From: Oikopleura dioica
Lineage: Eukaryota; Animalia; Chordata
Reading direction: 5' to 3'
Length of the DNA: 64,000 bases
NCBI GenBank assembly: GCA_907165135.1
Contig: OU015569.1
Location: 4,464,001 to 4,528,000 of the forward strand
Under the pieces are notes generated by a model, which was not told where the DNA came from, did not search any database, and saw nothing but the letters and a program-made list of their open reading frames with translations. Below are positions 26,072 through 32,100 of this stretch, piece after piece (the first letter of the stretch is position 1; each line of letters starts with the position of its first letter). A program made the position numbers and the translations under genes.

Positions 26072-26668
26072 ATGCTAGACATTTACCTCAAATTCACTCG
26101 AGTGCTCGGTAATCCCGGCTTTCAACTGAGAATGTGGGAACATAAACGTGAGTTTTTCATCTCTCTCTCGTGCGGTTGCACCTTTGAAAAGAAGCTCGCT
26201 GGAGAGGACCATACCGAATGCTTATTTTGGCTGACATACATCTACGGTGGAGAATTCATCGATTCTGAAGACTCTTATTGGATAGATCTCGACTTGGACG
26301 ACACTCCTCACGTCTTCTGCGAGAAGGATGAACATCAGCTCACTCGCATTGATGAGCTTGTCAAGCTGAGAAGGAATGTTATGTTGGAACGACCAAACGA
26401 CACTGCGTATGAGATTGGAGACGATGCCACTACGAAGGTGATGTACAAGCTTTTCTTCAGCGGCCCCGGTGTCACCATTGGCGGCGCTTTCATTCAAGTT
26501 CTTCTCGCTCCGATCAACGAAGATGTCGTCACATTTGACTTGGAAAAAGCGGAAGCAATGAGAGAAAGTCAACGATCATCAAACGAGTTGTTAAAGAGGA
26601 TTAACGAAGACCAAGACAGAGATGACTCCAATCAGACCCTCGAAGAATCTTCTTCTAACAACGAATAA
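26072..26668 (+). CDS. Hypothetical 198-aa protein with acidic tail
   Basis: Uninterrupted 597-nt ORF with coding-like composition; no family recognised. Confidence 0.65.
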   Translation: MLDIYLKFTRVLGNPGFQLRMWEHKREFFISLSCGCTFEKKLAGEDHTECLFWLTYIYGGEFIDSEDSYWIDLDLDDTPHVFCEKDEHQLTRIDELVKLRRNVMLERPNDTAYEIGDDATTKVMYKLFFSGPGVTIGGAFIQVLLAPINEDVVTFDLEKAEAMRESQRSSNELLKRINEDQDRDDSNQTLEESSSNNE

Positions 26669-27636
26669 GAAGAAGACCATCAAGAAACACCTGAAGATCT
26701 AAAAGTTTTATTGTCTGACTTGACTTCTGTCCACTGCCCTTTTGAAAACTACATTTCATACACTACTAACTGTACTTGAATTTTCCACTTTTATTCTTTT
26801 CTGAAAACATTTATTAATTAAATTATTTCCAAAATTTATTTTCCATTATTACTCCTGATCCTGCTTAATATCCGTGAAGAATCCTTAATACATTACGATC
26901 ACAGTCCTGATCAGTAACTGAACAATTGCTTCGGTGTCAAAACTGTCAATAATTCCTTCGATAATTGGACGAGCATCAGCTTTCTTTCATCACTGAATTT
27001 GAGAAAATACCATTAAGAGTTTAAACTACAGTTTGGGTTACTCAATCATCAGCTGTTAAAATGTCCGTATGACTAAGTTAATACTTTATAAACTCTTAGA
27101 GAGCTTCTTTAGCAGGAAAACATTTTGTCTAAGAGAGTATCCATAGGTGAGGAAAATATTCTTGCGAGCTTCCTTCGATATTTCTTATTGATGAGATTAG
27201 CAGTTTACATATACCAATGTTTATGCGATCTAGCATGTTATCAATTATTTATCTAAAAGAGTAGACTCGAGTGATTATTGCATGATCCACTTACTTAAAG
27301 TCTACTGTTTTTTGAGAAGAACAAACGAGATTCAGTGAAATTAGAAGTACCGACTGTTTAATAGATACATAAAGATATACCTGCCATTGATTCGAAAAGG
27401 ATTGAAATCAAGGAGGAAAATTTCGGCGATAATTGGCCGTTATTCTATGTAAAGAAGGACTCCTAGCGAAGCCAATTGCGGATTGATACAGTTGTCTGAC
27501 AGTAGACGAGTATCTCCGCTTGATCAGGTGGAAGTAAAATCAATCAGACGCCAGAATTGACTGCCGATAATTCCAGTAAATCTTTAATCAATATTTAGTT
27601 TAAAAATCAACGACGAGCACGATATTCCATCGAACA

Positions 27637-27895
27637 ATGACCCGGGCAATCTACTTTTTCTTTTTGATATGTTCCGCTGCGGTCTCCGTAAGTTTTCAGC
27701 TAGAGACTAAAATTTTCATTTTTTCAGGCTTCCGAGCACTTCCATGGTGAAAAGAGGAATTGGGCATTCGGCGATTTGATGAATCCCGACGGCTCCTTCG
27801 CCTTCGACAGTAAACGCAGCTTCGAACCCAGCTTTCGAATGCACAAACGGAACACTCCAATAGGAAGTGCCTGGCGAAATTGGCTTGATAAATAG
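27637..27895 (+). CDS. Putative neuropeptide/peptide-hormone precursor A (72 aa, two exons)
   Basis: Exon 1 27637..27687 MTRAIYFFFLICSAAVS; GTAAGT...TTTTCAG intron 27688..27727; exon 2 ASEHFHGE-KR-NWAFGDLMNPDGSFAFDS-KR-SFEPSFRMH-KR-NTPIGSAWRNWLDK*. Confidence 0.8.
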
Positions 27896-28698
27896 TTTTC
27901 GTTCATTGTTGATAAATTATAATTATTCGCATGGGAACATTTATCATTAGAATTCTTCTCTAACAACTCATTAATTTGTGTTTTCTCTCATTTCGTTAAT
28001 TTTAATTATTGTAGGAATTGAGAGGGTATTTTGGAGCAACTCATATGCCCCAAGAGTTTGACCATGACTTGGATTTAGATGACGTTAAATCTATGCTAAC
28101 TGCTGCCAAGGGTCCTAAAACTATTCGAATTTAATTAGACTAAGAAATCAATAAGGACCTGTAATCAGCGTTTAAGTCATTCATCCAGCCTTACAAAGCG
28201 GGGAATGATGGACAGAAACTTTGACCTTCGTCTGTTGGATCCTCTAGCCATTCAAGAACTCTCCAAGAATCGCTGACTCAGCTTCCTTCTATATCGACCT
28301 TTTCGGACAATTTATCTTTTTGTTTTTTCTTTATTCTCCACGCAATAAAGCTGTAAAAGGCTAATCGTCTGCAATTTTTTCAGCAAAATCGCATTTAGAA
28401 ATTAATTAAAACGGAACCGCAACGTCAGAAAATCAGACAGAGTTTGAATCAATCACCTGATAAATCTGAATAACACGACAGCAGGACGTAACGACAACTT
28501 TAGAATGCGCCCAGTTGAACATTAAACTTATGTTTTACACAAAATTATTTCTTCTTTATCGGATACACAAGGTCTATTCGAGCGCTTACGCTATCTCCAA
28601 ACTTGTTGTTCAAGTGAAATTGACTGATTTCTCTAATCAAATATTAGTCCACGCATCAATGGATGCGGTAATTGTCTTCGGAAGGCCTTAAAAGTATG

Positions 28699-28755
28699 GG
28701 GCCCATATTAATAATATCATATTAATATGGTATTAATAATGTGATATAATGGGCT
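28699..28755. repeat. AT-rich short tandem/inverted repeat (CATATTAATA units)
   Basis: CCATATTAATA (28703) pairs with TATTAATATGG (28720..28730); outer GCCCAT...ATGGGC. Confidence 0.55.
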
Positions 28756-29194
28756 CTGAAAATCGAATACGAAGTATGCCATGAGAACTCACGTTTACTG
28801 TCACGGTAAACATGGCGCGTTCTCATATTTACTACAAACGTGAAGGTCTTATTGCAATATCATCACTTGCTTGTGCGCTGCTTGCTGAAGCCTACAGCAA
28901 AATCATGAGTAGTACTATCAATACTCAATTAGTTTTCAGTTACGTTTACTACTCAAAGTCTTCCATTCAATATTTTTAATTAGACAAAAAGCTATTGCAC
29001 CTAAAGTAAGAAACGAAAATGTGAAAAGATGGAAATTTATTTGTACAGCGTTTTTTCATAATAGCACCGTAGAGAGAAAGCTTGAAAATATTATTTCATC
29101 TTCATCGGTGCTCATAATATATTCAAATATTATGCACTTGTCATATTTTATACAGAAGTAGCAGGGTCGAAATGGGAATAAGATGTTTGTCTTT

Positions 29195-32100
29195 TTAAAC
29201 GTGACAGCAGACTTTATGCTCATCACACAGCTTTTCGGATTGTGAAAGAGCCCATCGATAGGTTTCTACTGGACCAGCTGCAGGTGGAAGAGGTGCAGCC
29301 AAGATCAATTCCCGAGGACACAAGTAGCGTACTTTGTAATCGTCGCATTTGTATCCAATTGTCTGAAGAAGAATGTTAGGTATTTACAAGGAACGCACTT
29401 GTTCAAGCTAAAAATCCGCCTATCTACTCGCTCGGGATAACGAACCTGGTCACTGTCTTCACAAACAAGACCCTTCTTGGGCGAAAAGAACTTGAAAACA
29501 TCGCCAGTGCTCAGAGCATCGACGCCGTCAATGGCTCGCACAGCTTCAATTGCAACAGGATTCGCGCAAATGTCTGCGGTCGCTCGTGCTCGCTAAGAAA
29601 GAAAAAGAATAAAATCAGAATTCTCAACCACAAAATACCATGAGACTCTCATTGTCTCCGTGGAGGTCGTCATCAAGCGATGGGGAATCGGAATTGTACC
29701 ATCCAGTCCAAGCATAATCGTCAAAACTAAACTCGGGATCGTCTTGCTCTTCGATCAATGTAGCGATGCTGGAAATGACTTTGGTTGATTCAGAGTCGTA
29801 AGCGACGACGATGTCCATCTCGAGTTCAAGGTCAAACTCTTCATTCGGGCAGAAGAATCGCACTTTGTAGTCTGAGCATATTCCGCTAGGTTGATCTTCG
29901 CCACGACAAAGAAGACCACGAACGGGGTCGAGGGTTGCGAAAACATCGCCCGTCTCGCCAGCCGGTGTGTTATCGTTGACAGTTTGGGCCTGAATGTAGA
30001 TCGGATTTTCACAAATCTCTGCCGGTCGCAATTTTCGGAGGTCCTTCATAAGCTCGGAGTCAGTTCCGGAAATTGGGTTGGAAGTGTCCATCCAGTTTGT
30101 CCATCGACCTCGATCTAGACAAGCAGGTGGCACGTCACTGTGGCTGATTCCTCCAGCAGGACACATGAATCGCACTAAACAGATTTTACTATGTTTTCGA
30201 AAATACTTCAATTTAAAAAAAAATCAAGCTTTTACGAGAGTTAGTGCTAAGAGTGATAAGATGAATGATGTAACTCACTTTGGATGCGGCCAGCCTCGAG
30301 AACGCGAGCCTCCGAGCTGATGGCGTTCAAACAAACTCCTGTCGGTCGCTCGCGATGTAGAACGTCGAGGTCCAAACTTGGCGGGTTTCCACTAGCAGGA
30401 AGCCATGCTGTCCAGACCCCCGAATCAGGCACACCGCTGATGTCATCTGAATTGCGGTAAGGCTGTTTCCAGGCACTCAAATCGAGGGAGTGAATTTCGG
30501 AGCAAGGAACTCGCGGATTCGCGTTTCGGTTTGGCGAGCTCATTGAGTCATCTTCTTCGGTGGCGAAGAAGAAGGGAAGGCGTTGAATTGAATCCGTGTC
30601 AGTACACGTGCACATGAGAGAAGATAGCGTTATCTTTCGAAGCTCGGTAAGTTGTTCTGGTGTGAACGTCGTTTCGCAACCGCCATTTTCGAAGTAGAAT
30701 CTATCTCCGACCTTCAAGTCTCTAAATTGCGCCGCCATCATATGCGCAAAAGTGGGTCCAACGGCGCCACCGGAAACAGGTGTCTCGGCAAGCCCGCCAA
30801 CGTACAGGTCGATGTCATCTACGTGGTCGTAGAGACCTGACAAGGTGTGTCGCATGTCCGCAGGGATTTCCAAAAGCTCGTCGAAATGCGCCGCTCGTTG
30901 GAGCCCGAAAAATTCGCGGTAATCGTTATATCCTCGAAGGCCGTGATCTCGACCACGTTGGATATTGATGGCGAGGAGATCTTTTCCGTACTTGTCCGCT
31001 TCTGCAAAGAGGAATTCTTTCATAGAAGTTGGGAAGGTCGTGTCAGCCATAAGACTGGGATCGACGACGAGACCACGAAGGACAGGTTCGACTTGAGAGC
31101 CGTTTTGGTTGACGTATTCAAGAGGATTGAACAAGAAAGCCTTCATTTCAAGCGGTGACTGTTGATCAGTCCAATCGTTTGATGGACGAGAGAGCTGGTC
31201 GAAAATCATCGAATGTCCGAAACGGAAAGCTGCTGTGGTAAATTCATTCGCAACAGAAGCGTCAACAGAAGCATCGTAACCGTAGAAGTAGCCAGAACTT
31301 GCAAGGTCGAGATTGTAACGTTTTGTAAACTTCTTGCCGAGCATAGCAGGAAGATACTCGTTGTAGGTAATGATTTGATGCATCGCCGCTGAAAATAAAA
31401 TAAAAATATTTGATCGGCCTCTAAGACGCGAAGAATCTATCTTTATAGTGAAATTTTACCGATAATGAGTCTTGTTTCGTTGAAGACTGTGTCAGAAGTC
31501 CAATGAGGATTTAACGCTTTTAGTTCTCTCGCGATTCGATTATGCTCTCGCATGAAGAGCGTATGCATTGAGGCCAATCCCAAGTTTTCGTTAATTCGGC
31601 TTTAAAATTGTTTCAATAATTTAACCAAGAGATAAGGGACTTACGTATCACCGGCCAAAAAGCAATTTTCCTTTCCTTTTGCAAGCTTGAAGGGGCATGC
31701 AAAGCCTTTGGGACTGTTCTCTTCGAATATTTCGAATTTAGGCAGCTGCTCGAATTCGCCATGTTCTGGTGACTTTGGCTTGTCAGCTTTTAACTCGCCC
31801 GCCTCAGATTCCGGGTCTCGGATGCTCTCAGCTAGCTCCGCCGAAGTTCCGTAAACTGTCGTTCCATCAATGTAACTCGAGATCTGATTCAGCTGCTGTC
31901 TAGTGTACACGTCGCAATCTTTGCTCGGTGTTGGGAGACTTCTTTCGAGAGAGTGGCAAGTTTTTCCTTCGATGGTGAATTGGATATCATCCTCGGCGAG
32001 TGGTATATTAATGCATTCAGGATGTGGATTTTCGCAGTTGCAGTCCAGCTCTTTTCCATCGCTTCCTATAAAAATATTTTGGTTATCTGATTTGTATTGT

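Follow-up and report, generated by a model that had tools for sequence, protein, structure and literature searches.

A single-copy gene of Oikopleura dioica with prohormone-type architecture and a candidate 18-residue signalling peptide conserved in marine relatives

A small gene of the larvacean Oikopleura dioica probably encodes a secreted 18-residue signalling peptide, a neuropeptide or hormone, together with downstream C-terminal exons, a reading to which a probability of about 0.6 is given from sequence comparison. The gene lies on the forward strand of the window, the whole stretch of 64,000 nucleotides that was analysed and whose coordinates are used throughout, and falls in the X-specific region of O. 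dioica OKI2018_I69 according to the label XSR in the name of its public model. As judged from sequence, it is a real, protein-coding, single-copy peptide-precursor gene, and exon-wise protein, DNA, family-profile and degenerate-DNA-pattern searches of the whole O. dioica genome detected no paralogue beyond the locus. The exons served as separate queries, the only full-length query being the 72-aa database entry P0001. The peptide family is most likely undescribed in sequence and found in several related marine animals, carried by a prohormone-type architecture of a known kind. The nervous system of larvaceans is tiny and can be mapped, and the animals show stereotyped behaviours, among them house building, filter feeding and spawning; no catalogue of larvacean neuropeptides was found in the literature searched. 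A single-copy gene with a near-invariant 18-residue product would offer a concrete, synthesisable ligand for receptor deorphanisation, in situ mapping and knock-down.

Exon 1 (27637–27687, + strand) comprises ATG and 16 further codons, translates to MTRAIYFFFLICSAAVS and forms a signal-peptide-like leader, and the 17-codon hydrophobic signal exon proposed in the first-pass annotation was borne out in both coordinates and translation. The ATG at 27637 has an A at −3 and is the first one, because a stop codon stands in frame at 27601 of the window sequence. The leader carries one Arg, followed by a hydrophobic core of ~13 residues and a small-residue end (AVS); its mean Kyte-Doolittle hydropathy is 1.59, with 2.69 for the best 9-mer, and small residues occupy −3/−1 in a hydropathy-level test, either as AVS|A or as VSA|S. 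Secretion of the precursor is predicted on the basis of this hydropathy and −3/−1 pattern.

Intron 1 (27688–27727, +) is a 40-nt, phase-0 intron of the form GTAAGT...TTTTCAG, exactly as first proposed, and the open reading frames of two relatives, P0002 (encoded on contig L004) and P0010, run uninterrupted across its position, the protein matching on both sides (...CSA.. | ASE.F.GEKR). Exon 2 (27728–27895, +) continues in frame with exon 1 for 55 residues and a TAG and contains the three KR sites that had been noted in it. Its core (27728–27862, +) encodes the propeptide ASEHFHGE, KR, peptide 1, KR, SFEPSFRMH, KR and NTPI. Peptide 1, NWAFGDLMNPDGSFAFDS (27758–27811, +), is an 18-aa candidate bioactive product that contains the conserved core, with a predicted pI of ~4 and a computed monoisotopic mass of 1989.82. 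It and the two other peptides predicted at first pass translate exactly as they had been written. Base composition follows the exon boundaries, G+C falling from 47% in exon 1 to 27.5% in intron 1, returning to 50% in exon 2 and dropping to 24% immediately downstream.

The gene had been described as hidden and absent from the open reading frame track. The absence is true, since at this locus the ORF list is limited to two fragments, 37 and 39 aa long, and has none of at least 60 aa. When exon 2 was used in a word search, the one protein retrieved was the NCBI/UniRef entry Oidioi.mRNA.OKI2018_I69.XSR.g14538.t1 (P0001), which is identical to the 72-aa spliced model and has the same locus and the same two exons. 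Because this unnamed prediction was already public, the gene is missed only by an ORF list of the prokaryotic kind, and the claim of a hidden gene did not hold for the OKI2018_I69 gene set, whose models are automatic AUGUSTUS predictions (PMC8008620). The public model has neither name nor function, ends at a read-through TAG (27893–27895) and does not include the candidate exons 3 and 4 described below.

About ten relatives, all of them environmental, were retrieved by an exhaustive HMMER search and a profile word search. P0002 matches the whole 72-aa model at 75% identity and is encoded on L004, a 912-nt JGI contig whose source, sample 3300009608, is named in no paper found. P0010, a metatranscriptome protein, is 70% identical and aligns to the exon 2 core through its residues 29–72 at 72% identity. 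About eight more distant members were found in marine metagenomes or metatranscriptomes, and common to all of these are only a signal-like leader and a near-invariant core between basic sites. P0008 and P0011–P0016 are ORFs on marine metagenome contigs, among which L005, L006, L010 and L011 were inspected, while the source of P0006, P0007, P0009 and P0010 is MERC, in which 775 eukaryotic metatranscriptomes of Tara Oceans were assembled at the protein level (bioRxiv 10.1101/386110). Because the latter four derive from metatranscriptomes, relatives of the gene are transcribed and spliced. A search with P0010 yielded no further full-length relatives, and an exact look-up of P0006 and P0007 on contigs gave no record. 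Several matches were set aside: L003, the sole metagenome match to exon 2, is a repeat protein that contains the motif NPDGSFAFDP and was treated as chance, and P0003–P0005, long repeat or bacterial proteins matching by composition, were rejected as relatives.

The distant members are larvacean-like in having short introns (~30–50 nt) in some cases and a GA..AG intron. A Glyco_hydro_cc fragment that neighbours the family member on L006 shares 46% identity with a locus of O. dioica, a hint to a larvacean origin of the distant members that is suggestive, not decisive. Glyco_hydro_cc (PF11790) is mainly a fungal and bacterial family. It occupies 3234–3939 of L006 and also C5:1464292–1464525 and C4:2614483–2614781 of the O. 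dioica genome (G000), at 46–53% identity, and its presence in both may mark the lineage or stem from an old horizontal transfer. On the same contig, ~0.8 kb downstream of the family member, lies another short, hydrophobic exon with an ATG (L006 6126–6170), which reads MKFTFFIFVAFVNAQ and then GTAAGT and may belong to a further small secreted-peptide gene.

Codon-by-codon comparison with L004, carried out per exon, displayed purifying selection on the coding sequence of exons 1 and 2. Synonymous sites are saturated, with 34 of ~44 differing (pS 0.78), and 22 of ~172 non-synonymous sites differ (pN 0.128); pN is 0.076 in exon 1 and 0.06 in peptide 1 with its KR, and rises to 0.26 in the spacer. 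P0002 and P0010 retain each of the three KR sites, which settles in favour of the gene a check that the first-pass annotation had named. Across nine aligned members, the Arg before peptide 1 and W, A, F, D, L, M, P, D and G inside it are invariant; all 10 invariant positions thus lie within or next to the core, the mean column identity is 30% overall and the flanks barely align. The family core reads [NS]WAFADLMxPDGx[FY]x[FY], preceded in all members by KR, RR or QR and followed by KR or, in L005 and L010, by a K|R split by a phase-0 intron. Over the 16 core codons of six loci, 13 of the 15 pairwise comparisons have at least as many synonymous as non-synonymous differences, as in the window and L010, which are separated by 13 synonymous and 4 non-synonymous differences. 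Because the differences in the core codons are mostly synonymous, the constraint is on the peptide and not on RNA or DNA. Peptide 1 is thus a strong candidate for a product that is processed and kept constant by a receptor.

The gene architecture recurs in the relatives. The leader is hydrophobic in every member with a known 5' end, the leader sequences themselves being dissimilar. L005 has an 18-codon hydrophobic exon, a GT..AG intron of ~50 nt and then the peptide exon; in L010 the leader exon spans 369–413 and the peptide exon begins at 1114. The intron between leader and propeptide sits at an equivalent place in these two contigs. In L006 a leader-like exon lies ~30 nt upstream of the peptide exon, and in L011 leader and peptide share one exon. 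A counterpart of SFEPSFRMH was recognisable only in P0010 (SYEPSFRMR), and the peptide is absent from more distant members, where an intron directly follows the core. By this comparison SFEPSFRMH is restricted to the O. dioica complex, and peptide 1 alone is conserved beyond it. P0006 and P0009, two proteins of one relative, have different C-termini, and an in-frame insertion of 27 residues immediately behind the leader also sets them apart, a pattern suggestive of alternative splicing or of a retained intron in the species concerned.

The 3' end of the 72-aa model requires a different reading. Its read-through tail (27863–27895, +) consists of GSAWRNWLDK and TAG, and the first six bases of the tail, GGAAGT, are the candidate donor of a second intron. 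The stop position of the model is not conserved in P0002, and L004 has the same 12 bases GGAAGTGCCTGG although synonymous divergence is otherwise saturated, an identity that would fit a splice signal. P0010 departs from the model after ...KRNT(GT)PI and continues as DLRGYF. A matching candidate exon 3 (28015–28134, +), of 39 codons and TAA, starts with ELRGYF and would encode an acidic C-terminal peptide; it is single copy in the genome and aligns in BLASTP to residues 76–106 of P0010 at 52% identity (E 8e-11), collinearly with the match of exon 2. Since a TAG at 28012–28014 closes the frame ahead of 28015, the acceptor of exon 3 must be the AG at 28013–28014, in phase 0. The candidate intron 2 (27863–28014, +) would then be a 152-nt, phase-0 intron of 29% G+C with a non-canonical donor, GG..AG. 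When the sequence was read by hand, ATA|GGAAGT (27862|27863) was the only phase-0 donor found that reproduces the P0010 junction ...TPI|DLRGYF. A canonical GT donor was considered and rejected, the sole nearby GT (27867) being in phase 1 with no AG acceptor that restores the frame of exon 3.

Non-canonical introns make up 11–12% of O. dioica introns (PMC8008620, PMC7072748), and the median intron length in OKI2018_I69 is 49 bp (PMC8008620). Non-canonical splicing occurs inside the peptide gene family itself: the intron before the last exon of L010 (1517–1738) is GA..AG (ATGCAG|GACAG...ATGCAG|GAGCC), as confirmed by the metatranscriptome proteins P0006 and P0009. In the distant members P0007 and P0009 and in exon 3 of L010, basic-[GD]YF[GST] stands right after the core, and the GYF exon is therefore ancestral. 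The ~101-residue product that includes exon 3 is probably the conserved form. For the O. dioica strain of the window, we infer from these comparisons the GG..AG intron 2 and the use of exons 3 and 4. The locus illustrates how non-canonical introns can truncate automatic models of very small genes.

A candidate alternative terminal exon 4 (28199–28276, +), of 25 codons and TGA, directly follows an AG. The tail of P0002 after GCCTGG matches neither the read-through of the window nor exon 3, and the best ungapped fit of the corresponding 69-nt tail of L004 falls exactly at 28199 (35/69 identical, against 28/69 at the next-best offset); at the protein level, exon 4 matches residues 86–106 of P0002 with E 7e-4. 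The donor in the window that corresponds to the L004 exon 4 junction (27875) would be CG, and the case for exon 4 is weaker than that for exon 3. Further downstream, a conserved block (28314–28352, +) with AATAAA at 28344–28349 forms a candidate polyadenylation region and aligns to L004 860–899 with 33 identical bases; the contig itself stops ~17 nt past its own AATAAA. L004 appears to behave like a spliced cDNA with junctions at window positions 27687|27728 and 27874|28199. The gene probably spans about 27528–28365 and has alternative C-terminal exons.

The three peptides proposed in the first-pass annotation consequently fared differently. The first stands, being conserved beyond the O. dioica complex, and SFEPSFRMH persists as a peptide of that complex. 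The third, NTPIGSAWRNWLDK, is the least secure and is probably the read-through of a splice donor, orthologous transcripts continuing instead into 28015–28134 or 28199–28276.

The layout proposed at first, that of a standard prohormone-convertase precursor, was supported by the leader, the KR sites and the pattern of conservation, with a basic-site-bounded peptide in which the conservation is concentrated. In such a precursor, the leader of exon 1 would direct the product into the secretory pathway, subtilisin-like proprotein convertases would cut at the KR pairs and a carboxypeptidase would trim the basic residues, releasing NWAFGDLMNPDGSFAFDS as an acidic, aromatic, non-amidated 18-mer that would act as an extracellular signal. 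A receptor would probably constrain nearly every residue of positions 1–12 to 1–16 of peptide 1, and the remaining precursor would be free to evolve, its C-terminal part coming from 28015–28134, and perhaps 28199–28276, in place of or in addition to the read-through tail. Secretion, cleavage, signalling role and cell type of the product are all predictions in this scheme. The O. dioica genome contains the proprotein-convertase P-domain PF01483 above cut-off at ~6–7 loci. The Atlas model of the 72-aa protein is disordered (pLDDT 0.45), and its nearest language-model neighbours are mixed small neuropeptide precursors (PDH, DH31, PrRP, NPF, spexin, NPS and galanin) with scores of 0.86–0.91, which may serve as a lead to the kind of protein and to no single family.

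A secreted peptide with a non-signalling role would display the same leader and KR architecture. It might be a component or modifier of house or mucus, or a digestive, defensive or gamete/pheromone factor, made in epithelial or gonadal cells with constitutive processing of the furin type. O. dioica secretes many lineage-specific proteins, the locus adjoins a gene for a secreted peroxidase with a Mucin2_WxxW domain, and reading of the predicted peptides revealed no amidation or pyroglutamate signal. Such signals are present in most but not all neuropeptides. What this explanation does not readily accommodate is a short acidic peptide that stays near-invariant across lineages in which the flanks can no longer be aligned. 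Near-invariant short peptides are typical of receptor ligands, and structural or antimicrobial peptides are usually cationic or fast-evolving. A non-signalling role is regarded as unlikely, although it is the most probable of the alternatives.

The signalling peptide could also be a strongly diverged member of a known bilaterian family, such as bombesin/GRP-neuromedin B (W-A-x-G-x-L-M), tachykinin (FxGLM), spexin/galanin (xW...G12) or PDF/PDH, which is considered improbable. The first-pass annotation recognised no known family in the peptides, and this was upheld: no Pfam family was matched at E<=10 by six family members, none by exon 2 or the neighbouring ORFs, no described precursor was matched, and no paper with the core motif was found in the literature searched. 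The sequence WAFGDLM of the window resembles the WAVGHLM of GRP/bombesin and the FxGLM of tachykinins, and the heptad W-A-hydrophobic-G-x-L-M of bombesin/GRP/neuromedin B (PF02044) is indeed present in the window peptide. However, the motif is N-terminal in O. dioica and C-terminal in bombesin/GRP, DLM is followed by xPDG rather than by Gly and a basic residue, Asp replaces His, and the family consensus WAFADLM has Ala in place of Gly. Tachykinins end in FxGLM-amide, whereas AFGDLM/AFADLM is internal and has no amidation signal. Because the motif is N-terminal, the amidation signal is lacking and the consensus is WAFADLM, the features that define bombesins and tachykinins are not those of this peptide.

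PDH/PDF (PF06324), spexin (PF15171) and galanin (PF01296) have small precursors of like size; PDH, too, is an 18-mer that follows a KR, and position 2 of spexin and galanin is Trp, as in the window peptide. The Atlas scores are 0.91 for PDH and 0.86 for spexin and galanin. Yet the features shared at these scores (0.86–0.91) are few, neither a Pfam hit nor a Gly-dibasic after the peptide was found, and among the 10 best Atlas hits with a Pfam family, 1 shares a family or clan with the best. PDF is not known from chordates. A closer parallel in organisation is given by lineage-specific precursors of tunicates, for example the Ciona-specific peptides (PMC6475428), which likewise combine a signal peptide, a short spacer, a dibasic-flanked conserved peptide and a variable remainder and have no vertebrate counterpart; no sequence similarity to these was seen in the searches run, and the O. 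dioica peptide differs in being non-amidated and known here from sequence. A more far-reaching form of the preferred reading, a signalling peptide, is held tentatively and may well claim too much: a larvacean-only neuropeptide family unrelated to bilaterian ones, with the non-amidated core [NS]WAFADLMxPDGx[FY]x[FY] and its own receptor, in which alternative 3' exons, one of them through the GG..AG intron, switch the C-terminal co-peptide.

The conserved stretch might instead be a binding motif in an intact secreted protein of 70–100 residues whose KR sites are incidental or regulatory. Cleavage is only predicted, and exon 3 adds an acidic tail of ~40 residues that would suit such a protein. 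Basic pairs, however, flank the core in nearly all members while all else changes, the model is disordered, and three KR sites are unlikely by composition alone, arising in 0.15% of shuffles of the exon 2 residues; three KR occur in 4 of 441 open frames of 45–80 aa within the window. An uncut protein is considered just as improbable as a diverged member of a known family. A chance ORF or an ab initio artefact in a 2.6-kb intergenic gap, which the very short gene and the automatic AUGUSTUS origin of its public model might suggest, can be dismissed as highly improbable in view of orthologues with pN well below pS, metatranscriptome relatives and a gene architecture conserved in four genomic contigs.

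Just upstream of the ATG, a conserved non-coding block (27528–27636, +) of ~107 nt is identical to L004 447–553 at 94 of 107 positions (88%), far above the neutral expectation, the synonymous sites of the adjoining coding sequence being saturated against the same contig. The block occurs once in the genome. Its sequence elements include a TTTAAAA box that precedes the ATG by ~35 nt, the motifs ATCAATCA, GATAATT and TTTAATCAAT, and a conserved TTAG. No Rfam family was found for the block, with two sub-threshold matches only over 26600–29400; scores for the block in L005, L006, L010 and L011 lay within the shuffled null, and L004 1–446 had no match in the O. dioica genome. The TTAG could possibly be a trans-splice acceptor, and the block is a candidate proximal promoter or cis-regulatory element, outron or 5' UTR element.

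On the other side of the peptide gene, the minus strand carries a gene (29624–31383) that encodes an animal haem peroxidase domain (E 1e-86) together with a Mucin2_WxxW domain (E 8e-23), and the two genes converge across a gap of ~1 kb.
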